Positions 1-61,838 of a stretch of 64,000 nucleotides of DNA are shown one piece after another. A program made the translations under genes and the position numbers. The DNA is taken from the NCBI GenBank assembly GCA_946965045.2, contig OX337239.1, positions 3,038,001 to 3,102,000 on the forward strand. The letters are read 5' to 3'. This stretch comes from Epithemia pelagica. Its lineage: Eukaryota > Protista > Bacillariophyta. Below the pieces are notes generated by a model, which did no database searches, was not told the DNA's origin, and worked only from the letters and a program-made list of their open reading frames with translations. Position 1 is the first letter of the stretch. Every line of letters begins with the position of its first letter.

Positions 1-2
1 TT

Positions 3-1271
3 GTCGCCGTGCCAAAATTGTATGGACATGGAGCAAAGAGATCCTTCTCGTCATGGAATCGGTCCAGATTTTGGAAGAGACCCTTAGTGTATCATTCTTA
101 TGGATACCATAGGATCTGATCTCGTGATCTGTGATGAGAAAGGCTTGCAATAGACCATACCGATATAGCGTTGGCCTTGACATTGTCCAAAAATTTCGTA
201 GGCTCATTTTATCCTCCATTGAATCGTATGACAAAGCAAACAAGACTCAGAAATTCTTAGCGTTATTTGAATTTTCCCCATAAAAACGATAAGAACTGAG
301 AGATAGTCAGGATCAGTTGTTTTCTCCGAAGTACATCTTCTTGCAACCGCAAACAGAAATCCTCTTACCATTACTCTTCGAGAAGACCGTTCGATATCGT
401 ATAAAAGATGGAAGACTCGTCTTGGTTGAATACTGTTGCAATATGGAATCTCATCTCGAATACACGATTTGATGTTGAAATTTCGTTTTGTCTTCGTAGC
501 GGTGATAGGAATGTTATTCTCACTGAAGATGTTGCGGCAGCCAAATGAATCAAAAACGAATTCAAGGATCTTGTAGACAGGATTATTAATCACGAGGGAC
601 GACTTGATGTGATTTCCATTATGAATGGTAATCAAAAAACAGAAGAGCACCAGTGTCAGATGGGCACATGGGCAGACAGACCGGAATTCCTTGACGGACC
701 CTTCATCTGGAAACAAAACTTCCTCGAGACATGTCTTGTTTGTGGTAAATTCACCTGTAATCAACGGGTAACAATATACACATGCAAGCATTGTTTTGGT
801 CCTTTACAAGTACCTGGGTCGTCTTCATCTTGTGATACCACTTGTGCAAAGACTCCCTGTACTTCATCCATGAACATGTCCTTCGTATGGGAGTTCTGTA
901 TGACTTTACGAGAGGCATTCCAAGCGTGGTTTGACTTCCACAAGTTTGGAAAAAACAGAAAGATTCCCTTTTTTGAATATATCCCAGCCGAAACTTGTGG
1001 GATTTTGACAAAAACGGTCGGTAAAGTATGGAGAGAAAAATTGGAGCCTTATTACGACGAGGATACCAAGTGGCGTAGTCCATCTCATTTCATTCACACC
1101 GAGAAACAATGGGCATTGTGGCTGATTTCTTCACCACCTGGTTGCTCCTTTCGCAACTATATGCCTATTTTTACTGCATGTTATCATATAGCACAGGAAA
1201 ATCCAAAGAAACATGCTGCTGGTGTATCACAGAGTGCTCGCAAGAAACAAAAGACGTGGAATGCTCCCTGA
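3..1271 (+). pseudogene. Unknown Cys-rich (zinc-finger-like) protein; open part 609-1271, probable decayed 5' extension
   Basis: ORF 609-1271 has CxxC pairs (CLVCGKFTC...CKHC). The same frame runs back to base 3 through 7 stops (5 TGA, 1 TAG, 1 TAA). The upstream extension is weakly supported. Confidence 0.35.
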
Positions 1272-1310
1272 ATTTGTTTTTCCTTCGTGATGAATGCATC
1301 CAGAAAGAAT

Positions 1311-3326
1311 TTATAATGTTCCGCTACGAATACCTTGAACCGTCTTGGTTATACCATGGTCCTCTCTTGTTTTGTTGACAGTTGCATTCATAGACCTGGA
1401 ACTTACTGCCCAAAACCAACTAATAGTGTCGTTCTTCATGTTCCCATCTTTATGTTGTCTTTGTGTGTGTATTGACGTTCCATGCCGGATCACACGTCCA
1501 TCCCATAGAACCGAAACCCCATGAAATAGTTGTATACAAAGACCATGGTATGTAGTACCATCATACTCCACAAGAATATGCGGCAAAACAAAGAACCAAT
1601 TTTGGGAGTCACCTGGGATTGTCTCTGTCCAGATTGCGAATGAAACAGAACCATCGTGAACATCATAATGTGTCGTGTTCATGAGGTTCAAAATCAGGGT
1701 AATGGCTGAGGTCATACCTCCGACTCTTCCTCCGAATTCACTAGGCATTTCTTCGCCAGCTGAATCTTCTAGATACCGGAATGTTGGAATCACCCCAGGA
1801 TATTCGCGTTCACGGAACCTTTTTGCCGCTGTACTTATTTTCGGCAGTATCATCGATAATGTCTTGTCCTTTGTAAATAATTTCTCGGAAACGAAAGTAG
1901 AACCGTTTCCTCTTGCCGCAGTATTACCAACAGTGGTCATAGATCCCAAGTCTCCCTTATTACATCTGGCATTGGCCGCCTTTCTCTGAGACCCAGTACG
2001 TGTAAATTCCCTTGCTCTGTGGTGTAATAGGTCCAACAATGTCTGGTCCTTCCGTAACAGGAATGTCACTCGAATGTAACTAAGTGACTCTGGTCTCCCA
2101 TCATTTCGGCGTGTCGGAACAATGAAAGTAATGTTTCCCCGAATACGATGGTCGTATACCAGTGGCCTTGGGTGTGTACCGGACGACATTTGCAACCATA
2201 GGTTTCGATGCAAAGCACCGCTAACATATCTCCGACTCCCTTTCTTATCTGAGTCATTCCTCTTTATAATCAGCCTTGTTCGATATTGTTCCCGTGACAT
2301 GTGATGTGTCATCGACTGTTTATTCCCTGGCTTTTAAATCTTTCCCTTGTCATCGAGGTACACGTCAGGAGGTAAAAGTGGGCTCCTATCCTCCACATCG
2401 GACCATTGGTAACATTCCTTCACAGTTTTGCCATTATTAGTAAGATGTTCACCCCAATCTAGACTCCAACAACGATGAATCTTTTTCAAGAATGCATTAC
2501 TTGCAGGTTGGCCATCTTTGTGTCGCAGACGTAACCAAGACAACGGTAGTGGGACTGACAACGATGTGATGTTGGACGACCTTGACAGTTCTTGAAATTG
2601 ACGCACACATGTATAAAAACCCCAGCCAAAGGGAAGAGGATAATGATATCTCTGAAGAGGTGATCATTTTCGTCAAGGCATTAATTTTTTGTTAGTCCGA
2701 ATCATCATGACAGGATCTTCGAATATAGAGGATGACACATGTGTTGTCTTCTTCCTGATTTCTCTATATCTTGTCCTCGACAAGGTACATTCCAATATGA
2801 ATGCATTGTGGATCGTTTTAGTTACAAGACCCACCGGGATTTGTGCAACAATCATAGGACAACATTCTGGTGTAATGTTCGAATGACTGACAACGTCATC
2901 TCTTGTCTCCACAACATCATCCACAGCCTTGTTGTATATTTCTGGGATACGTGCAAAGACACTTGGGATATCTTTCATATCGACCTTCCGTTGTATCATA
3001 TCCTTTTCAAACGACAAACCAAAACAATCTTGATCGTCGTAACTTCCAAAGCAACGCTGCAGTAGATGCAATAGCATCCTTATTTGATCGATGTCCTTGT
3101 CCAAGACAAAGTAGCACATTCTTTCATGTGCACTTTCGTTCTGATGCGACATGGCGACCACTGTTTCACTTATACGTTGCGTTTTCTCTTTTTCGTACTT
3201 GGCATAGGTCTCCTGTGTACATGTGAGTCTCGAAATCGTCTGATCCGATGCCAAATCTTCGAAAGTGAGAAAAATATGTTTCTTCTTTATGGATGTCACC
3301 TCCGCTCTAGGATGTGTGCTTGTCAT
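1311..3326 (-). pseudogene. TET/JBP-family 2OG/Fe(II)-type dioxygenase gene; catalytic ORF 1311-2312 is open
   Basis: NLMNTTHYDVHD aligns with the JBP/Naegleria-Tet NFxTxxHxDxxD motif (HYD at 1662-1670). WFFVLPH follows, then WDGRVIRHGTS with the distal His at 1482-1484. ORFs 2673-3326, 2334-2606 and 1311-2312 are all one frame, broken only by TGA (2673-75), TGA (2664-66) and TAA (2334-36). Confidence 0.72.
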
Positions 3327-3433
3327 TTCCGAACTTCTTGTACTACAAAGACATAGTTAGTACGCGGATAGAAATGCCAAATACCTGAAACTAGAACGTC
3401 TCTTCTCTTGATGGAGAGTACTAATAATATAGA

Positions 3434-6400
3434 TCAGACTTGCCTTTTCGCTTTTGTGTTGATGATCGTGACAGTAGAAGATTCAGTTTGGTCTCTCCTA
3501 TTCTTCTCCCTTTGTTGTTCTTTACTCATGGAACGGATAGTTTCCAACGGTACACGACCCCATGCTGTCTCTGGAAATACAGGGACCGGTCTGTAGAGAC
3601 CACGATGTTCCTCTTTTGACACGCCAACTTCTTCAACTGAACCATCATGTGCATTGGTGTACGTAATCGAAGCAATATCTCCGTTGCACAAGGGGCAACT
3701 CTCGTTGATTTCAGGAGGTGTCGATTTCTGTTTCCCCATAGGAACTTGTTTTTCGGTGGTAAGGACATGACCAAGACACACCTGACAAAACTTGTGCCCG
3801 CATCTCTCGATCCGACAGTCGTTAGGACGCTGTCCATGGTATATGGCACAATATTGTTCGGAGTCTTCATCATATTCGTCTAGGACGATTGTCTTGTCTT
3901 TCTTCGCGATTAATTCTGTCTCTTGTAGATCGTGTGGTATTAGCTCAGCATGACTATGACCACATATGGAACAAAATCGATTCTTCACCGAATTCCGGAT
4001 GAAAGTACATGTTGGACAATGATAATGAGGACAGTTGGAGGTTTCTTGCCTTGTCCAACTCACGATAGAAAAGGTCCGACTTCTATCCAGATCCTTTTTA
4101 AGCAATGAGGTCCCACAAGTGGAACAGAGTGCCTCTTTCTGATCTTCATCGTTCAATGTTCGTACCAGATCCAAAAATCGCCGATCTTCGCAAAGTCGTT
4201 CGAGCGCCTTGTCCGCTCCTGTAATCTCTTGTATCACTTTAATGTCCTCGAATCGTTCATCGTCGGAATCCAGCACATCTTCCATTACCTCCCCTCGATC
4301 TTTCCCTTCCATTATAAACCGGCGACTGCGTTTGATCCTTGGACGTGTATTGTCATTAACGTCCTTGAAACATACACGCAGAGTCGAATCACGTTTCGCT
4401 CTATTGATAGCCGTACTCACGATATGATTGCAGGCCTTGTGACATTCTCGCCTACACGATGGCAATTCTTGAGCCCATTTCCCCATCATCTGATCACAGG
4501 ACATATAAGGGGACGCCTTTGACAGGATCTCGTCGATCACACGTATTATTGATACTTGGGGAAGCGGACACGCACTTGGTGCCACCGGATTCGGATACTT
4601 CTTATAAATGAATCTCCAGTCACATCCAACGAGCTCCTCCTTTATATCAACGCTCAAGAATGATTGGATTTTCTTATCGTCGTCCAATAGCCTTAGTTTC
4701 CGAAGACATTGAATCACTGTAGGCCTCCACGAGCGAATATCCCTTGTCAATAATGGATCGAATATCAACACTTCTCTTTGATGTGCTTGTAAGAGGATTA
4801 AGACGGGATCAAAAGCTTCATACTTGGTAGTGACGACGACCAATGTAGTATCGGAAGACGACGAACTCAAATCCATTGCAGTCGTTGTGTCCATTCTCAG
4901 ACTATCTTCGTCGATTTGCTCAAAGGAAACGGACTTGTTGTGCCATTTATGAACCACCAGCACAAGCATCGACCTGAATATAAGGGGAGGGATCCCCTTA
5001 AACTTTGTCGTCTCTTGAGTATTCGTCCGTAGCAAAAGGTTTCGTCTGTACTGGCGATGTGGGACAAAAAGGACGTCCATTTTCCCATTGTCATGTTGTA
5101 GAGAACCATTCTTGTTGGAACAGCAAGCACAGGTAAAGACAAATCGCAAAACAACTTCATGGATGCTTCCCTTTCGTCTAACGGCACTTTCTTTACAGAG
5201 ATCCCAAGCTTCATTGATTGCTGACATCGACTGTTTGAGGGACCAGTTAGCCATATGAATCAAACGGTCATTAGTGAAAGATGCAAGGTCGTCTGATGGA
5301 CCAGGTTAATTCTTGAGAGGAGGTGGTTTCTTTGATATTCCTTTAGGTTTGTCGCTACCGTGGTCAACATGTGATTTACTTTCCAACAGACCCACCTTCG
5401 ATTGAGAGGAAGATTTTTTGTCGTCGCTTGTTTTCTTTTTGTGGTTTCTTTTTCAATGCAAGAGTATCAAAAATGGAACTCCAATCCTCCTCGCTTGCTG
5501 ACAGAGACTGAGATGGTGATTTGCTCTCGTTATTTGAAACAGTGAAAATGGTAGAAATTGTTGCACCATCACATCTACTGTCTGACGCTCGTTTACGGCG
5601 TTTCCTGTCTTGAGATTGTTGTTCATGTCGCCCCTTCTGATACTCCTTCGTCTTTGTAGCGTATTCCCGTTCCGTCGTCTGGTAATATGAAATTAGAACC
5701 GCCAAATTGGAATAGTCGTTCGCGGGATACTTAGCAGCTCTTGGTATGTCAAAATAAGGACGAAACCAGCAATCAGGAAGTGTAAGGGCTAATGCTTTTT
5801 CAACATCGACTCCTTCCATTTCATAGGAGTCAGATTCCAATACCCGATAGACAGCTGCCATATGTTGAACGCTCCAATCCATTTCTCGGACTGGTATTCT
5901 TCTGTCTTTCCGAAACTTTGATCTATCAGACGTCATGTAGTCCAATATTTTTGCAGCCACGACATTAAGCCGTCTCTCCATCGAATACGAGTTGAGGACA
6001 ATATCAGCGAGCATAGGATGGGCTCCAAGAAACACCTTGAAGGATCGAGTAAAGCTTGCGCTCGACTTTGATCCTGTCGTGCACGTGAATTCCTTGGTGT
6101 CCCACAGACGAAGTGCGTCTCCATATAGAGTTTGTTCGAATAGGTCGATTCCTGGTGAAATAAAACTACCAGCTCCGTCACTCTTGTTTCCCTCTTGTTG
6201 TTCTTCGATCGTCTCTACAAGTCTCAGTATCTTTGGGAAACAAACAGCAGCATGCGAGGCGATATCACTGAAAATACTTGATCCACAGCGCAAGAGGGAT
6301 ACGAATATGGTTTCACCTCCATATGTAGTGGAGAAATCTGTCCAATTATCAGTGTTGGAATAAACAGAACGATACCAATCGATTGTATATTCATAACATA

Positions 6401-6446
6401 TCAAGTCTGGGAAATATCGATCGGAATCTTCTACCGAATCAGCCAT
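3434..6446 (-). pseudogene. ~1000-aa protein with a RanBP2-type zinc finger and a C-terminal RING finger (open part 3434-5263)
   Basis: YHCPTCTFIRNSVKNRFCSICG is RanBP2-like. CAIY...CGHKFCQVC...CPLC is a RING with one ligand changed to Tyr. ORF 5376-6446 can be joined by one frameshift near 5430 and one in-frame TAA near 5307; this join is inference. Confidence 0.55.
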
Positions 6447-6529
6447 ATTAACGTGCGATTCAATCAGCTTGGGGAAGAAACAAGGAGAAATTTTCTTTTG
6501 ATGCAGGGTTCCGATGCAACTTGATACTA

Positions 6530-7330
6530 CCGTTTCTCAAGCTTGCGTGATGGAAACCCTGTTCTCCTTGTTCCTATCTGAGAGTGGTAATCTTGTGGAC
6601 TGACAGAATGTGAGAAGCAACGGCAACAGAGCAATCCAACAGGGTCTTGGTCAATAGGGATGGAGGAGTGAAGGAAATGGGTGTACCAACTTGATGTCTC
6701 GGTCCTTCCAGTCAAGAATCAGTAGCAAATACAACAATCCAATAGGGTCTTGGTCGATAGAGATGGAAGAGGGAAGTATGGGGGCGAACCAACTTGGTGT
6801 CTCGGCCCTTCAACAGAACCACCAATCAAGATACAGCAATCCAATGGGGTCTTTGTGGTCGATGTAGATGAAGGAGGGAAGGAGAGTGGTGCACCAACTT
6901 GGTGTCTCGGCCCTTGTTCCAATCGGGAAGGAGTAGCAACACAGCAATCCAACAGGGTCTTGGTCGATGGAGATGGAGGGGTGAAGGAAATTGGTGCAAG
7001 AAGGAGTAGCAATACAGCAATCCAACAGGGTCTTGGTCGATGGAAGTGGAGGGGTGAAGGAAATTGGTGCACCAACTTGGTGTCTCGGCCCTTGTTCCAA
7101 TTGAGAAGGAGTAGCAACACAGCAATCCAACAGGGTCTTGGTCGATGGAGATGGAGGGGTGGGTGCACCAACTTGGTGTCTTTTGCCCTTTGTTCAATAG
7201 AATCCTCACCAATCCAACCGTTCAGAAGCAGCGGCAATCCAGCAATCCAACCAGTTTTGGTCGATGGAAATTGATGGGAGAATGAAATGGGTGCACCAAC
7301 TTGGTGTCTTTGCCCTTTTTCAAACAGAAC
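6530..7330. repeat. Degenerate tandem minisatellite, ~100-110 bp unit, 6-7 copies
   Basis: Recurring CAATCCAACAGGGTCTTGGTCGATGG and CACCAACTTGGTGTCTCGGCCC blocks. Confidence 0.85.
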
Positions 7331-7508
7331 CACCAATCCAGTCGTTCAGAGCGTTGAAATTTGTCTTGTGGGATGATAGGAGGGAAGAAATAGTTGCCAA
7401 ACAGCGATCACATGGTTGGGTTTTCATGGAAACAGAAGAAAATGATTAGTGGGCATATAGGAAAACGACAAAACGAACTCTCACTGTTGTCTTGTCAACT
7501 TGGCTTAC

Positions 7509-11800
<4,292 letters not shown>

Positions 11801-13239
11801 TCAATGACTGTTTCGATGTATGCTTCTTCTTACATGCTAATTCGTGCCAGGCTATTCCTTGTCTATGGAATCCTTCACCACAAAACATGCAGAAACGATC
11901 ATACTTCCCGCTATTCGATACTGTATATTTTGATTACTCTGGGTTCTCATTTGTACTGTGTGGGAGTTGCTTCCTCTATCTTCCCATGGTCGCTCTAAAG
12001 TTATCTTGTTATTCCCTTTGGAATCGAATACAACGTAACAACCAACAAAGGTGGACGAAGAAAATAATGACATCAGTGTCGTGCATACTTAGGTACGTGG
12101 TCCACCCTGCTTCTGGGGGAGGAATACTATAAATATTTCTGGGGGAATTAACGGTCGAGAATTTTTTTTAACATTGGGAAGAAAATACGTTGCAAGCGTG
12201 CAGGTCTATAACGGGAAACCTGATTTCTCGGCTGTCGGCAAAATTTCAAACTGAAATAAATACAGAACGATTCCAACCAAAGCAAGTAAAAGAATTTCAA
12301 ACCATGATACCAACCGAGTCTGAAGCACCAAACGAGACGATGTGTTTTGAAACATGGAACCAGGACTCGTTGTTTCTTTCTAGTACATTGATTTGGAACA
12401 GTGCTCAGGTTACCCATAAACTGAAAGAAGTGTGGACAAAATGGCAACGACCGGTAGACGCATACAGGTGGATCGAGGAAGCAATGCCCGTCAAAAGGCA
12501 ATGAGTGACCGCAACACAGCATACAGAGACAGACACGAAAAAGATATAGAGAAACAAGAGAGAGAGGCCAGGCAACGCCAACAGAACCGGGAGAGACGGC
12601 AGGCTCAAGATAAGGAAAACCAAGTCGGAAATCAGGCTAACAATCGTCTCTCGTTATCTGGGCAAAGTACTTATGTTGGAAACGTAGAAGAACCTGCATT
12701 TGAAGACAATGATGGATCGGTGGAGCAGGGTTCAGGTGACAGTCGATCCAGACCTCTATTTGGAGACTCCACGATGAACGATAATATGAGAGACAGAACA
12801 GACACTACAGGTTTGAGAACACAGCCAACAACAATGTCCCAAAGGAACCCCACCAGAGACAATGGTGTGTAATATATCATTTTTGACAATCGTCACATGG
12901 ATCATACTCACACTTGTCCCTCTAATGTACTCAACAGACACAAATCAACAGAGTATGTCTGATATAGCACAGCCAGTCGGAACTGAAGTTAGTAAGTTGT
13001 AATGAAATTCCTTTGAAGAACGGTTGACATTGAAGCCATCGGCAGCTAATACATGTGGGTGATATGATGGGAACAGGTGGACATGTCGCTCATGATGTTT
13101 CTTCACTTTTGGATATGTCCTTTACCACAGGTGGATTTTCCAATCGGAGCCATTTTACAGCTGTGACACATTTGACATCATAAACTCAAAAGGCAAGAAA
13201 AGACTCATCTGCATCTGGTGACATGCCAGTTTCTGAAAC

Positions 13240-14316
13240 AAGTTCCTTCAAATAGTTTGCTACCAGGAATTGTTTTAGGGTTTGCAAATATTGGAGTGAC
13301 GAGGATAACATACCAGATGAAAAAGGGTTGTACAAACTTGCAAAGACTTACTTCAAGGAATATTTTCAAAGGAACGGGCTCACTAACAAAAACATGAAAG
13401 AGACATGGTAGGTTGAACATGTTCCTCACATGAAAAGATATTTGGGAGTGAAAAGGTCGAATGAACTTGCCACATTCGCAAGAGCTTTTAAGGGTAAGAC
13501 TCGACCCCCATCAGACTGCCATTGTGTTCTTCTTCTTGGCTTACTTGTGTCTCTTCATCTTCTATAGCCCAACTCAAGAAGGATATATGGAGGTTTTACA
13601 AAGATGGCGTTCTCAAAAACACGTTCCCAACGATGTTTCCAAATGATGAGTATGGGAAAATGCCTTCGTTGGATGAGATGTTGGGAATGAGAGGAGATGA
13701 TTGTAATAATAGTGCTTATGCATACATGATCTTGGTGTTTGCTACAGCTGTCTGTGGAGAGTCAGTGACGAAGGAAGTTTTTGATTTTGACCCATCAGAC
13801 AAAAATATACCAGAAGATGAAAAGAAGAGATGGTTGAAGAAGGCAGCAAAGAAAATTACACCAAACAATGAGGCATTCATGTTAACAATTCTTGAGGACA
13901 ATTGGGATGTGTGGACATTAGAGGCAACCCTTCAGCTGAAATGGTCAATCAAGGCATTAGACCCTATTTGGTATGGTGATATGAATGTTGAGAAGGAACA
14001 AGTAAGTGAGCAAGTGGATAAATAAAGATATTCCGGAAGAATGGGTAAAAACAGAAAGATGGATGCAAGAGGGTTGAACAGGTATGAACAACTACAAAAC
14101 AATGTTGTTGAAGACAGGAAGAAAGAGGTAGACAATGAATTTTGGAGATTTCTCAATACAGAGTATTGCAGAGTGATGAACTATGGTAATAAAAGAAAGG
14201 GTGGTAGTACTGGGCAACGGAAGCAGAAGTAATATCTATGTGAGGAGACTGAAGATGAGGAGTCTGTGGATGGGGATGACGATGTGCAAGTGCAAACAGT
14301 ATTAGTGCCAATTTAG
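13240..14316 (+). pseudogene. Spliced gene of an unknown TE-associated family (…NEAFMLTILEDNWDVW…GLNRYEQL…VVEDRK…)
   Basis: A 74-bp intron at 13494-13567 (GTAAG…TATAG) joins FK-G/CC(A)QLKK in frame. There are nonsense codons relative to its inverted copy, e.g. TAA where the copy has TAT and TAA where it has TTA. Confidence 0.6.
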
Positions 14317-16112
14317 GTAGAGGTTTTATGTCAGAATGAAGAATAACATGATTGCCAAAATTCCAGTATGACAAGTCCTAGTATGCAGTGATGATGCCCA
14401 TGAATTGAAAATACTATGACCAAGTAAAAGCACATGTGTTGTTAATATCATGTCAGGGGAATGTCCATGTGTGGTTTATACTATGACGGTGGAATGCTCA
14501 TGTTGTTGTTTGTATAATGTGAACATGATGTTCCTGGGTATGTTCAGTATTGACTGTTCATGTCCATTTGTGTTCTGGTTTCATTCATGGAAAATGTACA
14601 TACCGGTGGTATGAAATGGATGGCAATGTACCCCTATTATGAAATGAAAATGTGCCAACTTTCGGATAATTAATGCGCCCATTGGGGTAAATTATATGTA
14701 TGAATTGGGGGCATTTTATGTACAATTGGGGTGCATTTTATGTACAAATGGGGGGTGCATTGGGGGTGCTTTATTACCCCCTCAGATGCGTCCTTCCTCT
14801 TGGATCCATCCAACGAGCAATTCATGTACGACATAAATAATAAACACAACCTTCCACAAAACAATCACTGGTACTTGTACCCAGACAAATGGCACATTCT
14901 TGCAGATCTGATACTCTTGGTGTTGGAGATGAATCGGTTAGATCGATGACTCTTTCGTCATGCTCTCTTGTTGGGACTGATGGAACATCCTCTAAGATTT
15001 CTTCTCCATCCACAGTATGGTTAGATCTATCCATCGATCCCACGTTGTTGTCATCTCCAGGTGATACAGAAAGATCCACCAGCATCAAAACCATCGTCCC
15101 CTGGGTCCAGCAAACACCTTTCACAACAAACACATGTATTCATATCCGCTAAAGATCGCAAGTACACCGGAATCTCATTCCTTGGCAATGAAATATTGTC
15201 GTTGGCCAGTTGATGGCTATTCATAGCACATGTGTAGTTATCCGGGTTCAGATTACGATCAAAGTTGTTTTCCGATTCAAAATTATGTTCGTCACCATCG
15301 TAGACATCGTGAATAGTGTTCATGTCTCCACGGTAGCATTCCACCGTCATAGTATAAACCACACATGGACATTCCCCTGACATGATATTAACAACACATG
15401 TGCTTTTACTTGGTCATAGTATTTTCAATTCATGGGCATCATCACTGCATACTAGGACTTGTCATACTGGAATTTTGGCAATCATGTTATTCTTCATTCT
15501 GACATAAAACCTCTACCTAAATTGGCACTAATACTGTTTGCACTTGCACATCGTCATCCCCATCCACAGACTCCTCATCTTCAGTCTCCTCACATAGATA
15601 TAACTTCTGCCTCCGTTGCCCAGTACTACCACCCTTTCTTTTATTACCATAGTTCATCACTTTGCAATACTCTGTATTGAGAAATCTCCAAAATTCATTG
15701 TCTACCTCTTTCTTCCTGTCTTCAACAACATTGTTTTGTAGTTGTTCATACCTGTTCAACCCTCTTGCATCCATCTTTCTGTTTTTACCCATTCTTCCAG
15801 AATATCTATATTTTTCCACTTGCTCACTTACTAGTTCGTTCTCAACATTCATTTCACCATACCAGACAGGGTCTAATGCCTTGATTGACCATTTCAACTG
15901 AAGGGTTGCCTCTAATGTCCACACATCCCAATTGTCCTCAAGAATTGTTAACATGAATGCCTCATTGTTTGGTGTAATTTTCTTTGCTGCCTTCTTCCAC
16001 CATCTCTTCTTTTCATCTTCTGGTATATTTTTGTCTGATGGGTCAAAATCAAAAACTTCCTTTGTCACTGACTCTCCGCAGACAGCTGGAGCAAACACCA
16101 AGATCATGTATG
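13721..16112. repeat. Inverted duplication: arms 13721-14498 and 15335-16112 (778 bp each), spacer 836 bp
   Basis: Both arm ends pair exactly and give the same coordinate sum (29833), so there is no net indel. The ORF translations are near-identical. Confidence 0.95.
14780..14910 (-). pseudogene. Degenerate RING-finger fragment
   Basis: ECAICLGTSTSDCFVEGCVYYLCRT*IARW. Confidence 0.4.
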
Positions 16113-38532: not shown

Positions 38533-40625
38533 TCACACATGAATTTTTCCTACCGGTGTTGTCGGGAAACACTTACCATAGACATTTTCGCCACCAATGG
38601 TACACCTATGTATGGACGGTAGTTTAGTTGGAAACAAACCAATGAAATCATTGATCCATTCGCTCGCATCCCGAGTACAAATTGCCGGTGTTGACGCACT
38701 CGCTGTAGAGCGACAGGGCGGAAGAACCCATTGGCATCCTGGGAAGGCGTCCACTACCACTGGACTGAGAATCGAATGTGGGCAAGCCATTTCATTCCGA
38801 GCTAATGCACAGAGAAGTTCAGCAATCGGCCATTTCTTTTGAACATAATGTGTAGTCGTCACGCACACAACCACTCCTGCTGTTAATACATGCGTCAACA
38901 TGGTCACTTCCGGATCTGGCTGTTTTCCGGGCTTCATGGTTTTCTCTGCCACAAAAATATTGAGTGTGTTACCACCACCAGCCGCGTTTTGCAACTGATC
39001 CTCCAACCTGGTTACATAGTCAAACTCACGTTCTTTCCGAACTTCCCCAGCAAAAGAAATGAAAATGTCGTGTTCCGGTTTCTGGTTTTCAGAAGGTAGC
39101 TTGTCAAGCATCATCTTTGCCACCTCAATTCCAAATCTCAAAATTTCTTGAAGCTTCTCTTTCTGGTGATCAGACAAGTTTGTCAGCGCCGCTGCCCCAG
39201 ACATCTCAAGTCGTATCCCATTGATTCTTCCAACTACGTCAGACACCTTCAATAGATGTGTGCCAAGCTCATCAAAGTTCCATGACTGCATCGAATCTAA
39301 CTGGGTAATTTGAGTAAGCCCGAGGAGAATGGCCAACTCGAGAGACATATCCAAACACTCAACGTGATTACTGATCCCGGCAATAACCCGACCAAGTAGG
39401 TTGGCATTCTCTCCCAATAACGAATCACTCTTGGTCTTGGTAATGAGTCGAGGACCGGCTGTTAACAACGGAACGTCGAGTCGATGAATAAAGCAAGAAG
39501 GAGCCTTGGCTTGATTCATTCCGACATGAATGGTATGCCATGGACGACGATGAATGGAAAGAAACAAGCTCCGAAATGCTTCGTCGTCGATGGCCAGGTT
39601 GGAGATCCAGAACCAGGACCATGTGGTGTTACGTAACAATGCGATTTGCAGTAACTCCGCTCCCATTTCGCCAATCTCAGTATGGGATACATTCATGCAA
39701 CGCCAATCACGATTGCTCTTCATACCCTTAACCAGCGCCTTGATCCCAGTGTCATCAAGAGCCGTATGAGATAGATCAAAAATTTGCCATTGATGACTGT
39801 TTCGAAACAGGTCCGCAATGGCATTGGCTCCCTCATCCCCAATGTCCAGATGACTCAACGACAAACAAACCCAATGGACATTGCCTTGTGGTCTAGATGC
39901 CAGAGCGGCTGATGAAATAGAAGCACTGTTGCTGTCAATGATCTCTGACGTTGCACCATCACCTTGGATGGACTGGATCAGTCCAAGGGCTGCTGGAAAG
40001 GTCAACCGTGGCGTGTGGTGGAATGAAATGGTTCGAGTGCCCCGTTCGAAGGCAACATGCGTAAATCCATGGATTGCCAGCATTGTCCCAAATACTCTGC
40101 CATTTCCAGGGCATCGGTTGCTTTGACGTGATTGGTAAGGAATAAATTCGTAATGGTTTCTACCTTCACTCCAATTTCGTGTGGATGGTCCTGAAGCAGA
40201 AATGTTAGGTGCTCCATGGGGTTGGTGTAGCCATTCGTGATCTGAAACCAAAGTACCAGAGACCTCCAATTCTTCTCCAATCGTTGGAGAATGGCTGGAC
40301 CAAACTTGAGCCACGACCCAATTTCGTACAATCCTACATCTAATACAAACCGTTCCCAGCTTGGTGACGTTTTTAGTAGATTGGCCAACATTTCCACACC
40401 TTGGTCTGGAGTGCCATAAGGGAGACTCAAAATAAAATATTTCCAAGACGTCTGCCCACGGAGACCCTTGGCCACTATGTCGACATGTTTTGTCTTGTCC
40501 AAATCCAGATCAAACACTCGCCAGACTGTATTGCCATGCAGTGAGTGGGCAACGGATCCCAGTCCTCCATCAAAATCAAAATGAGATGGGCATTTATACG
40601 CACCCTGGTGTCCAATTGTTTTCAT
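38533..40625 (-). pseudogene. LRR (ribonuclease-inhibitor-like)–helical–TIR protein, 3' half; one frameshift near 40000-40070
   Basis: LRRs LSLSHLDIGDEGANAIADL, FDLSHTALDDTGIKAL and MNVSHTEIGEMGAELL. TIR motifs HDIFISFAGE (~39061), IFVAEKTMKPG and VVCVTTTHYVQKKWPIAEL (Glu at 38818-20). Confidence 0.75.
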
Positions 40626-57782: not shown

Positions 57783-60700
57783 CAACCAAACCCGGGGTGG
57801 TTCCCCGGGCTGCTTCAAGACATCAAGCAGCTCATATACACAGTATTAGTGACGATCGTGTTATCAGGTTATACAATACTGTGTTTCGAGCTATGGTCCC
57901 CTAGACGAACTACCATCGACTACTGGCTAAAGACCGCAAGCAACGCATGCGACCAGATGGCGACTACTATGGCGACCGCAATCAAGACGAAGAAGAAAAG
58001 ACGACTCGACCATGGTAAACTACGACGACGGAGGAAGATGACCGGACTCCTAAGAGCATTATGCATGGTGACGATTCTTACTTCAACAACTGGATTAGTA
58101 TCCAACAGAGCGGCCCATGACGTCGGATTCGATACCGACAGCCGCAAAGTACTCATCGACAACTGTGCCACTGCGTCCATCACCAACGACATCAACGATT
58201 GTTGCACGAAACCAGTCAAGATTAAGCGACGAGTGAAAGGAGTGGCCGGGACGTTCCACCCAGACATTTACGAGACGACGATACGATGGGATATCGAGGA
58301 CGACGATGGGAAAATACATACAATCACGCTTCCCCGATCATTCTACATCCCATCAACGCCGACGCGACTCTTGTCTCCACAACACTGGGCTCAAACCGCA
58401 AAAGACAACAAACCTGTACCGAGAGGGACTCGATGCACAACATATGGTAACAGTATCGAACTCGTGTGGGGACAAGGACACTTCAAACAAACAGTGCCGC
58501 TCAACAAGAAGGGATCAAACGTTGGAGAATTCACAACAGCCCCAGGCTATACACGATACGAGACGTTCTGCAAGAGAGCGGGCACAACGATCGAACAAGA
58601 AGATAACAAACCACTGTTAGCTCACAACGCGAATCTTATCGAAGACGACGACGAGTCCATCATTGAACGATCTCCAGCAACGGTCGGAGAAGACGAATCG
58701 ACAGACGACGAGAGTATTTTCCAAAACGACAATCTCGACGACGAGGAAAATGAGAAGTACTTTCCGAGTAGAGATGTACCGATGACTACAGAATTTCTCA
58801 TCGGTCCGAATGAAACGGTACACGTGATCCCCAACGAAGAAGAACGACTACCCGAGAGTCCAACGCTAGAGTTACTCAGGACTCACCACCGTATGGGACA
58901 CCTCTCTATGGCTAAGATCCAATCAATGGCACGTCAGAGTATACTCCCAAAACGACTGGCTAACTGCAAAATACCTGTTTGTACAGCATGCATGTACGGA
59001 AAGGCGACCAGACGCCCATGGAGAATCAAGGGTCATCGAGGTACATTGGACGTCATGACGTCACCAGGACAATGCGTATCCGTGGATCAAATGATATCCA
59101 AGACTCCAGGGTATATAGCCCACTTACGAGGGACTCCAACACGGGACCGATATAAGGTGGCTACTATCTTTGTGGATCACTATTCAGGTATAGGTTACGT
59201 TCACTTGCAGAGAACTACATCAGCAAAAGACACTATAGAAGCTAAAGATCGATTCGAAGCATGGGCCGATACGCATGGAGTTGCAATTCGTCATTACCAT
59301 GCCGATAACGGTATCTTCGCTGACAACAAGTTCCGAGAAGCCGTCCAAGCGAAAGGCCAACGCCTTACCTTCAGCGGGGTCAACGCACACTTCCAGAGCG
59401 GTATGGCCGAACGCCGCATTCGGGACCTACAAGAATCAGCACGAACCATGCTAGTTCATGCACAGAGACGCTGGCCGTCCACCATAACGACGAACCTATG
59501 GCCCTACGCCATAAGATACGCCAACGACATGTTCAACGAAGCACCTATGAAGAAACAGAAAGACAAAACTCCAATGGAGTTATTCACTGGTTCAACAGTT
59601 CGGTTCAATACAAGACTAGCCCATACGTTCGGGTGTCCCGCTTACGTGCTTGACAACGATCTCCAGAGTGGAACACCTATCCCGAAATGGTCAGAACGCG
59701 CTCGGGTTGGCATTTTCTTGGGATACTCTCCGCAACATTCTAGAACCATTGGGCTTATTCTATCACTATCATTCGGATTGACGTCACCTCAGTTCCATGT
59801 GCAGTACGACGACGCTTTCGAAACACTAAGGGCGAGTTTTGGAGAAGCCCCGCCAGTATCACAATGGCAGTACAAAGCAGGATTTACGAAAAGAGCCCCA
59901 CGAATGAGGGAGACAGCAAGTGTACCTCAACTCGGAAGCACAGCGACGTCACCAAGGAGAACAAGAATTGCAAACGACGTGCCGCATGACAACGACGTAT
60001 CACATAATGAAGAACCGTCCTCGGACACTATGCATCCTACCTTAGATGAGGGAGAAACGCTACCCCAACATGAGGGAGCTAGGCGGTCGCAACGTACAAC
60101 CCGTCGGACTCAGAGGTATCAGGACTATTTGACATCGCTACAAGACAAAAACGACGCCATTGCAGAATTAGCTATCACTGCTAAACCAGCGATTACGGTC
60201 AAGACAGCCCAAGCAAACAGTAACCCAGATGTAATGTACTGGCATGAAGCTATGAAACAGAAGGATCGAGAAGAGTTCATCAAAGCCGCTCAGAAAGAAG
60301 TACAAGATCATAGCGACAATGGCCTATGGGAAGTTGTCAAAAGGAAGGATATTCCGAAAGGAGCATTGATTTCACGCGGAGTATGGAGCTGTGTTCGAAA
60401 ACGAAGACTCAAAACAAGAGAAGTCTATAAATGGAAATCAAGGCTCGCTTACGACGGGTCTATGCAAGAAAAGGGAGTCAACTACTGGGAAACATATGCC
60501 CCAGTTATTCAATGGCCGGTCGTCCGTTTTGTCTTAACTATGGCACTTACTCAAGGATGGCATATCAAGCAAGTTGATTACGTCTTGGCGTATACGCAAG
60601 CAGTGGCGGAGACCGACATGTACATGGAGGCGCCAAGGAGCTTTACATTCGACACCAAAGGCAATCAACGAGCCGAGGATTACGTGCTCAAAATCAAACA

Positions 60701-61838
60701 AAATTATTACGGCCAGAAACAAGGAGCCCGAGTATGGAACCAGCACTTGGTCAAGCGGCTGAAAGACGTGGGTTTCCAACAGAGTGCATATGATGAATGC
60801 CTCTTTTACCACGGAAAGTGCGTGTACATTTTGTACACTGATGACTCTCTCTTGATGGGCCCAGACCAAGACGAGCTAAACAGGTTGATTGTCACAATGG
60901 AAGAAAGTGGATTGAAGATGACGTACGAGGACGGAGTAAATGATTTTCTCGGAGTCAACGTTGAAAAGAAAGACGATGGAACCATCCATTTGACCCAACC
61001 ACATTTGATCGACTCGATCCTCCACGACCTTCACTTGGTCGACAAAACAACCAAGACAAAAGACACACCGGCACCCACAACGGTACGACTAAGACAAGAT
61101 CAGGACGGGAAGCCTTTTGACGGGCACTTCCATTATCGAGCCGCAATAGGGAAACTGAATTTTCTGGAAAAGAGCACTCGGCCAGATATCAGCTTCGCCG
61201 TTCACCAATGTGCAAGATTTTGTGAGAATCCACGAGCGATACATGGCAAAGCAGTAAAACACATTGCACGTTACCTTGCTGCCACAAAGAAGAAGGGGAT
61301 CATCCTCAACCCAGACGAGACACAGTCGTTCCAAGTCTTCGCAGACGCCGACTTCGCAGGTAATTTCAATAAGCTGGACCACCCGAATCGGGACATGGCA
61401 CGATCGAGAACAGGGTTTGCAGTCATCTATGCTGGTTGTCCCATCCTGTGGCAATCCAAATTGCAGTCAGAGATCGCATTATCAACAACGGAAGCCGAGA
61501 TTATAAGCCTCTCGCATGCATTACGTACCGTGATCCCATTGATGTCCATCACTCGAGAGATGAAGGAATTGGGTTTCCCAGTACTATCCACAACGCCACA
61601 AGTCCACTGCAAGGCATTCGAAGATAACAGTGGCGCTGTGGAATTAGCAACAGTACACAAGTATCGCCCTCGAACACGATATCTCTGCACCAAGTTGTTC
61701 CACTTCAAATCTTTTGTGGAACGAAAGGAAATCGAGATCCTCCCATGCGCGACAGACGACCAGACGGCAGATATCTTCACAAAATCTCTTAGTACGACGC
61801 CCTTCGAGCAACACCGCAAGAAACTTCAAGGATGGTAG
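57783..61838 (+). CDS. pol: Pol (protease, integrase, RT, RNase H), open reading frame
   Basis: LIDNCATAS; HHRMGH…CTAC; SVDQM, FVDHYS, DNG, GMAERRI; RLAYDG, QVDYVLAY, YYGQKQGARVW, YTDD; FADADFAG, STTEAE, EDNSGA, ADIFTK. Confidence 0.95.
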   Translation, partial: QPNPGWFPGLLQDIKQLIYTVLVTIVLSGYTILCFELWSPRRTTIDYWLKTASNACDQMATTMATAIKTKKKRRLDHGKLRRRRKMTGLLRALCMVTILTSTTGLVSNRAAHDVGFDTDSRKVLIDNCATASITNDINDCCTKPVKIKRRVKGVAGTFHPDIYETTIRWDIEDDDGKIHTITLPRSFYIPSTPTRLLSPQHWAQTAKDNKPVPRGTRCTTYGNSIELVWGQGHFKQTVPLNKKGSNVGEFTTAPGYTRYETFCKRAGTTIEQEDNKPLLAHNANLIEDDDESIIERSPATVGEDESTDDESIFQNDNLDDEENEKYFPSRDVPMTTEFLIGPNETVHVIPNEEERLPESPTLELLRTHHRMGHLSMAKIQSMARQSILPKRLANCKIPVCTACMYGKATRRPWRIKGHRGTLDVMTSPGQCVSVDQMISKTPGYIAHLRGTPTRDRYKVATIFVDHYSGIGYVHLQRTTSAKDTIEAKDRFEAWADTHGVAIRHYHADNGIFADNKFREAVQAKGQRLTFSGVNAHFQSGMAERRIRDLQESARTMLVHAQRRWPSTITTNLWPYAIRYANDMFNEAPMKKQKDKTPMELFTGSTVRFNTRLAHTFGCPAYVLDNDLQSGTPIPKWSERARVGIFLGYSPQHSRTIGLILSLSFGLTSPQFHVQYDDAFETLRASFGEAPPVSQWQYKAGFTKRAPRMRETASVPQLGSTATSPRRTRIANDVPHDNDVSHNEEPSSDTMHPTLDEGETLPQHEGARRSQRTTRRTQRYQDYLTSLQDKNDAIAELAITAKPAITVKTAQANSNPDVMYWHEAMKQKDREEFIKAAQKEVQDHSDNGLWEVVKRKDIPKGALISRGVWSCVRKRRLKTREVYKWKSRLAYDGSMQEKGVNYWETYAPVIQWPVVRFVLTMALTQGWHIKQVDYVLAYTQAVAETDMYMEAPRSFTFDTKGNQRAEDYVLKIKQNYYGQKQGARVWNQHLVKRLKDVGFQQSAYDECLFYHGKCVYILYTDDSLLMGPDQDELNRLIVTMEESGLKMTYEDGVNDFLGVNVEKKDDGTIHLTQPHLIDSILHDLHLVDKTTKTKDTPAPTTVRLRQDQDGKPFDGHFHYRAAIGKLNFLEKSTRPDISFAVHQCARFCENPRAIHGKAVKHIARYLAATKKKGIILNPDETQSFQVFADADFAGNFNKLDHPNRDMARSRTGFAVIYAGCPILWQSKLQSEIALSTTEAEIISLSHALRTVIPLMSITREMKELGFPVLSTTPQVHCKAFEDNSGAVELATVHKYRPRTRYLCTKLFHFKSFVERKEIEILPCATDDQTADIFTKSLSTTPFEQHRKKLQGW

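Follow-up and report, generated by a model that had tools for sequence, protein, structure and literature searches.

The TET enzymes, which depend on 2-oxoglutarate (2OG), carry an Arg on a strand of the barrel (R1896 in TET2, R289 in NgTET1) which forms a pair with 2OG's C5 carboxylate and is strictly conserved among them (PMC7854593). Phage TETs keep this strictly conserved Arg as well (PMC8256090), and the dinoflagellate TET/JBP hydroxylases also retain it (PMC11572971). Among the enzymes of these papers, CMD1 is the only one that does not use it, and its product is a novel DNA base derived from vitamin C. CMD1 is a Chlamydomonas TET homologue that acts as a vitamin-C-dependent 5-glyceryl-methylcytosine synthase (PDB 7CY4-7CY8). 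Its Trp358 sits where the Arg side chain would otherwise lie and is in steric conflict with 2OG's C5 carboxylate (PMC7854593). The original prediction, which described CMD1 as lacking the canonical 2OG site, was only approximately right, since a structure-based alignment shows that the aligned residue, Arg410, is kept and points away (PMC7854593). Two further contacts are known from these structures: a second conserved Arg (TET2 R1261, NgTET1 R224, CMD1 R244) lies at the C1 carboxylate of 2OG and over the base, and the N4 atom of 5-methylcytosine (5mC) is bound by Asp350 in CMD1, Asp234 in NgTET1 and Asn1387 in TET2 (PMC7854593).

In this study, we analyzed a window of 64,000 nucleotides from the diatom Epithemia pelagica (assembly GCA_946965045.2, contig OX337239.1, positions 3,038,001 to 3,102,000), in which the original prediction had proposed a TET/JBP-like enzyme without the canonical 2OG-binding Arg. 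The corresponding open reading frame (ORF; 1311-2312, minus strand) comprises 333 aa and was assigned, based on an AF2 model and structural matches, to the C-terminal catalytic (double-stranded beta-helix) domain of a TET-like gene. Homologues are 550-700 aa long, and the ORF therefore represents the C-terminal half of the gene only; its frame extends upstream to 3253, with interruptions. Nucleotide alignment showed that the whole degenerate gene (1311-3253, minus strand) is collinear with an intact paralogue, P0008, which is a single unbroken 647-aa ORF at positions 10001-11944 of another locus (L002, ENA assembly ERZ21939226). Overall, we consider it likely that the ORF encodes the catalytic domain of one decayed member of a transposon-associated gene set, present in many copies, for a TET/JBP-fold Fe(II) dioxygenase, and that it belongs to a family which lacks the Arg and presumably has a remodelled pocket.

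A Pfam scan of the window ORF gave no match at E<=1, and scans of the first six homologues returned nothing relevant. Pfam matches that could bridge to known families were absent in ten of the most divergent members, and no TET was recovered from the PDB sequences, whether the query was the protein itself or the A1 or A3 profile. Sub-threshold Pfam matches were obtained for a few of 99 members, five of them to PF20515 (best 3.4e-4) and one to PF12851 (0.005). As the window ORF has no sequence match in Pfam or the PDB, membership in the TET group rests on these sub-threshold matches together with the predicted structure. The AF2 model built with 99 homologues (alignment A3) reached a pLDDT of 92 and a pTM of 0.91, compared to a pLDDT of 35 with six sequences only. 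Foldseek placed TET2 (E 1.6e-10), CMD1, CcTet and NgTET1 at the top ranks, with E values ranging from 1.6e-10 to 1e-6. Structural alignment with VIA-align gave Z scores of 16.9 for human TET2 (267 residues, 4.4 Å), 16.2 for CMD1 (259 aligned residues), 16.1 for Naegleria NgTET1 and 15.4 for Coprinopsis CcTet; the next families, ALKBH3 (Z 12.2) and FTO (Z 11.8), followed about 4 Z units below this group. Feature-based and shape-based neighbours in the ESM Atlas included phage Tet_JBP clusters (PF12851) and PF20515 'Tet-like' clusters, as well as an unnamed cluster in which the few phylum-assigned members are mostly Bacillariophyta. With an exhaustive profile search, 895 representatives were recovered at E<=1e-3, of which 583 also pass E<=1e-10, and no Pfam model exists for the family. 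Based on the predicted structure, we conclude that these sequences form a large, very divergent family with a TET/JBP fold, which agrees with the fold assignment of the original prediction.

A fold of this shape could also belong to an enzyme that does not act on DNA bases at all, namely a TET-shaped oxygenase whose substrate is a protein, an RNA or a small molecule, or else a DNA-binding protein without catalysis. The AlkB/FTO-type enzymes of RNA and DNA repair do match at Z 11-12, and the family has no Pfam membership. We nevertheless regard this reading as decidedly unlikely: the TET structures outscore all others by about 4 Z units, with a coverage of 260-270 residues including the N-terminal extension, the Asp at HxD+3 matches the residue that reads 5mC, and the link to DNA transposons mirrors the TET/JBP cargo described in fungi (PMC12730594).

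The translation of 1311-2312 contains the stretch ...NTTH215YD217VHD220GS... and, further downstream, ...WDGRVIRHGTSIHTQRQHKDGNMKNDTISWFWAVSSR..., which spans the WDGRVIRH277GTS motif, T296 and R306. Here, H215-Y-D217 (1662-1670, minus strand) represents the proximal iron ligands (HxD) and H277 (1482-1484, minus strand), within DGRVIRHGTS, the distal one. In order to compare these positions across the family, 143 domain-covering members, comprising profile-search representatives and close cluster members, were aligned to the domain profile; removal of near-identical cluster members left 126 non-redundant representatives. Both iron-ligand motifs are invariant in this alignment (143/143 in each case), and the ligands are intact in the window copy, as the original prediction had assumed.

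The last barrel strand comprises residues 296-301 in the AF2 model and lies within N294-A302 (NDTISWFWA; 1407-1433, minus strand), where TET/JBP enzymes have R-x-S. None of these residues is basic in the window protein, and neither Arg nor Lys occurs between K293 and R306. The original prediction had read Thr in place of Arg on the strand that follows RHGTS, and inspection of the raw sequence showed that both the peptide and its coordinates are correct (RHGTS codons at about 1473-1487, T296 codon at 1425-1427). The assignment of T296 to the Arg position was judged from the ends of the aligned ranges of TET2 and CMD1, with an uncertainty of +/-2 residues in the register; alternative registers place N294 or S298 at this position, and all three residues are non-basic.

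The comparison with intact paralogues that was proposed along with the original prediction showed that the Arg is missing family-wide, including close intact homologues. In P0008, which is 97% identical to the window protein, the strand reads NHTISWFWAVSSR, with no Arg or Lys at N294-A302, and intact paralogues (647-662 aa) carry either NHTISWFWAVSSR or NDTISWFWAVSSR. Across the 143 members, the consensus after the distal His is N(115)-H/N/D-V/T/L/C-Y/F-G(127)-W/T/C-F(101)-W/F-A. Only 7/126 non-redundant representatives have an Arg or Lys at any of five same-face positions on the inward side of the last strand. Because the intact paralogues and nearly all of the 126 representatives also lack it, the loss of the Arg is, as judged from these alignments, old or ancestral in the family and not a product of decay in the window copy.

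The window copy itself is nevertheless a pseudogene. Compared to the P0008 gene of L002, it shows 97.5% nucleotide identity over 1942 aligned bases, with two indels and, outside the shifted stretch, one nonsense codon. The latter is an in-frame TAA (2334-2336, minus strand) at the position of the paralogue's GAA (Glu307), and it severs the N-terminal half. The two indels, one inserted base at about 2690 and one deleted base at about 2619/2620, delimit an out-of-frame stretch (2619-2690, minus strand), and this +1/-1 frameshift pair yields TGA stops at 2673-2675 and 2664-2666. An intron or a recoded stop at 2334-2336 was ruled out, as the 97%-identical paralogue has GAA within a continuous 647-aa ORF; the indel pair in the window also opposes this reading. 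Furthermore, two changes were private to the window copy when judged against ten paralogues: S207I (I207; 1692-1694, minus strand) affects a near-invariant Ser (123 Ser and 3 Thr of 126), and N245H (H245; 1578-1580, minus strand) a near-invariant Asn (115/126). Given the nonsense codon, the frameshift pair and these two substitutions, the copy is, on the evidence of its sequence, dead, a pseudogene inside a decayed copy of an element; the neighbouring RING and transposase genes are broken too. A solo catalytic half at L001 5899-6744 (ENA ERZ21939226 ctg1357l), 70% identical at the nucleotide level and with a diverged C-terminal strand (…LETIPLGGFGPW), looks like another decayed fragment.

It could be assumed that the missing Arg merely reflects decay of this locus, in particular as the copy is a pseudogene with private changes at near-invariant sites. 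The original prediction had also considered that the enzyme might simply be decayed, which applies to the copy, with its stop, indels and private changes, but not to the Arg, whose loss is not part of this decay. The intact 647-662-aa paralogues lack the residue as well, a basic residue is found there in only 7/126 representatives, and the codon changes that separate its catalytic half from L002, 12 of them synonymous and 9 non-synonymous, suggest descent from constrained genes and point to past constraint. Decay as the sole cause is therefore hardly credible.

Next to the iron ligands, several other residues are strongly conserved. Their equivalences to CMD1 and TET residues were derived from sequence offsets to the metal ligands and not from superposition. 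D220 (1653-1655, minus strand), an Asp in 125/126 representatives, lies at HxD+3, where CMD1, NgTET1 and TET2 have the residue that binds N4 of 5mC. W228 on strand III (1629-1631, minus strand) is a Trp in 112/126 and occupies HxD+11, the putative equivalent of CMD1 Trp358. In the three representatives with Ala at 228, a Phe occupies the same face at the second residue before it; a strand-III aromatic is therefore present in 126/126. A candidate for the Arg that contacts the C1 carboxylate or stacks on the base is R116 (1965-1967, minus strand; Arg in 111/126) within N-A-R-x3-G-D-x-G-x-M, located 99 residues ahead of HxD, compared to 101 for CMD1 Arg244. Likewise, S207, F241 and T279 match by offset (Ser/Thr at His-8, Phe at +26 and Thr at distal His+2) the ascorbate-contacting residues Thr337, Phe371 and Thr399 of CMD1. 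TET2 also has a Thr at distal His+2, and this position is thus not diagnostic of likeness to CMD1. Further conserved residues are R273 (108/126), R276 (112 Arg and 10 Lys of 126) and H264 (110/126), whereas position 261 is Lys or Arg in 88/143 members and Gln in the window's own subfamily. Judged by conservation, R116, R273, R276 or H264 might serve as alternative holders of 2OG.

This leads to the question of which co-substrate the working enzymes use. That they still take 2OG, held by other residues, has in our view close to an even chance. A specific version, to which we give somewhat less credit, is an ordinary 2OG-dependent hydroxylase of 5mC (or T) in which a basic residue from another element, such as R273 or R276 of DGRxIRH, K/R261 or H264, holds the C5 carboxylate. 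A precedent exists in the JmjC/FIH-type oxygenases, where a Lys of another strand has this role. The fold and the iron site are canonical, R273, R276 and H264 lie near the distal His in the sequence and show strong conservation, and a basic residue at 261 is frequent (88/143). Against this, general fold topology would place R273 and R276 at the barrel's open end, in the turn that immediately precedes the distal His, while the C5 carboxylate lies deep; the Gln at 261 in the window's subfamily argues against this position as the holder; and the bulky strand-III aromatic, present in 126/126, sits at the offset where Trp358 of CMD1 blocks 2OG. The use of another co-substrate, for instance ascorbate as in CMD1, leading to a non-standard base, is by analogy a serious candidate as well, if somewhat short of an even bet, whereas working enzymes without any catalytic activity appear unlikely. 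As the family retains both the putative cytosine-reading Asp (HxDxxD) and, at the Trp358 offset, a near-invariant Trp, a CMD1-like chemistry independent of 2OG is plausible but unproven for it. The interpretation given in the original prediction is thus supported in part: the fold, the iron ligands and the family-wide loss of the Arg bear it out, whereas the making of a non-standard base by this enzyme is a candidate role only.

Comparing the family to CMD1 in more breadth, the likeness includes the predicted TET-type fold, the HxD...H triad, the Asp at HxD+3, the offset-matched residues listed above and an Arg about 100 residues ahead of HxD. However, window protein and CMD1 share only about 15% identity, with no match at the sequence level. 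CMD1 has its turned-away Arg410 on the strand and uses Arg418 and Phe416 for the base, whereas the strand of the family described here has no Arg at all; in addition, Val342 of CMD1 contrasts with Asn212 in the window protein. With the 2OG-dependent 5mC dioxygenases TET2, NgTET1 and CcTet, the family shares the fold, the iron triad and the Asp/Asn at HxD+3. In place of R1896/R289 followed by Ser in TET2 and NgTET1 (PMC7854593), it has N/H-V/T-Y-G-x-F.

A further group of related systems are the TET/JBP genes that transposons carry in fungi (KDZ, Plavaka and others; Kojima 2025, PMC12730594), which similarly combine a multicopy TET-fold gene with, or place it beside, DNA transposases and are presumed to act in anti-silencing (PMC12730594). 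These elements reside in fungal hosts, whereas the host here is a diatom, and loss of the 2OG Arg is not discussed for the fungal cargo in that study. Identity with the fungal 'PE type' was ruled out, because its hallmark is HxE, while HxD is present in 143/143 members of the window family. The dinoflagellate thymidine hydroxylases CryTJ1 and AmpTJ1 resemble the family as divergent protist TET/JBP proteins tied to repeat silencing. An assignment to this TJ1 type was likewise rejected, since HRD and the 2OG H...R motif are kept there (PMC11572971) and the strand Arg is absent here.

The genomic surroundings link the gene to mobile DNA. Positions 1-7634 of the window share 92-96% identity with L002 over a Cys-rich gene, the dioxygenase, a RING gene and repeat arrays, and the 90% cluster of P0008 comprises 23 members, which are spread over many large contigs within a single assembly. 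The Cys-rich 'NYMP' gene (408-1271, plus strand), assigned by homology to L002, is arranged tail-to-tail with the dioxygenase in the same repeated block; its part 408-974 shares 91% identity with a 192-aa product of L002, but the two copies have different ORF limits, and the gene shows a weak RING-like Pfam match. Directly upstream of the dioxygenase lies a Zn-finger/RING gene (3434-6446, minus strand), which is a 1003-aa ORF in L002 and is frameshifted in the window into ORFs 5376-6446 and 3434-5263. The RING gene and the dioxygenase are encoded on the same strand and may be co-transcribed or work together. Using tblastn and Pfam, the remains of a transposase resembling Plavaka, split over several broken frames, were identified at 9219-11393 (minus strand), where a 1188-aa PF18759 (Plavaka) protein of locus L004 matches with a tblastn E value of 3e-39; the Pfam match of this region to Plavaka is weak. 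In L004, the 1188-aa Plavaka gene adjoins P0010, a homologue of the dioxygenase with 30% identity, and in fungi Plavaka is among the DNA transposons that carry TET/JBP genes (PMC12730594). The block common to the window and L002 stops at about 7634, short of the Plavaka-like frames.

Several repeats were also recorded in this part of the window. Positions 1-179 correspond to one unit of a satellite of about 170 bp, and the same satellite forms a tandem array of about 5 kb beside the Cys-rich gene at L002 13659-18645 (about 30 matches, 71-75% identity). A 9-bp tandem repeat array with 62 copies in register (7423-8100) creates long multi-frame ORFs (7495-9746); it is adjoined by repeats of about 105 bp (6600-7340) that are common to L002. 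Further downstream, a 666-bp inverted repeat (13833-14498 and 15335-16000), whose arms are 98% complementary and 836 bp apart, may represent the termini of a foldback or other element. The remaining window is eukaryotic in character: at least six Kelch-repeat genes form an array at 27223-53842, with a TIR-domain gene (38533-40446) among them, and an unbroken 1329-aa ORF at 57849-61838 (plus strand) encodes a copia-type polyprotein with gag-pre-integrase and RVT_2 domains.

Returning to the reading that we prefer, an Arg-less TET/JBP-fold dioxygenase family associated with transposons, working members would flip 5-methylcytosine, or cytosine, out of the DNA helix and modify it there, by analogy with NgTET1 and CMD1 and in view of the Asp at HxD+3. 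In the co-substrate pocket, the strand-III Trp, or the Phe two residues earlier, would take the place of the Arg in the manner of CMD1 Trp358 and would face Gly/Ser and Val/Thr on the last strand. Such enzymes would probably protect the mobile element in which they reside against silencing by methylation. A more far-reaching proposal, which by analogy with CMD1 is conceivable but which we consider doubtful, is that a widespread transposon-borne TET-fold clade of diatoms and other protists has abandoned 2OG and, with ascorbate or some other co-substrate, converts 5mC into a non-standard base, e.g. a glyceryl adduct. If this were true, CMD1-type chemistry would be common and not an oddity of Chlamydomonas, and mobile elements would gain a new route to mark or unsilence their own DNA.

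As the whole family lacks the Arg that normally holds 2OG, its working members may use an unusual chemistry. With hundreds of clusters, no Pfam model, a retained iron site and a putative cytosine-reading Asp, this Arg-less family offers a ready test of how far CMD1-type chemistry reaches, and also of whether DNA transposons outside the fungi carry enzymes that demethylate or mark DNA. For this purpose, the dead copy in the window is valuable as a pointer to intact paralogues such as P0008.
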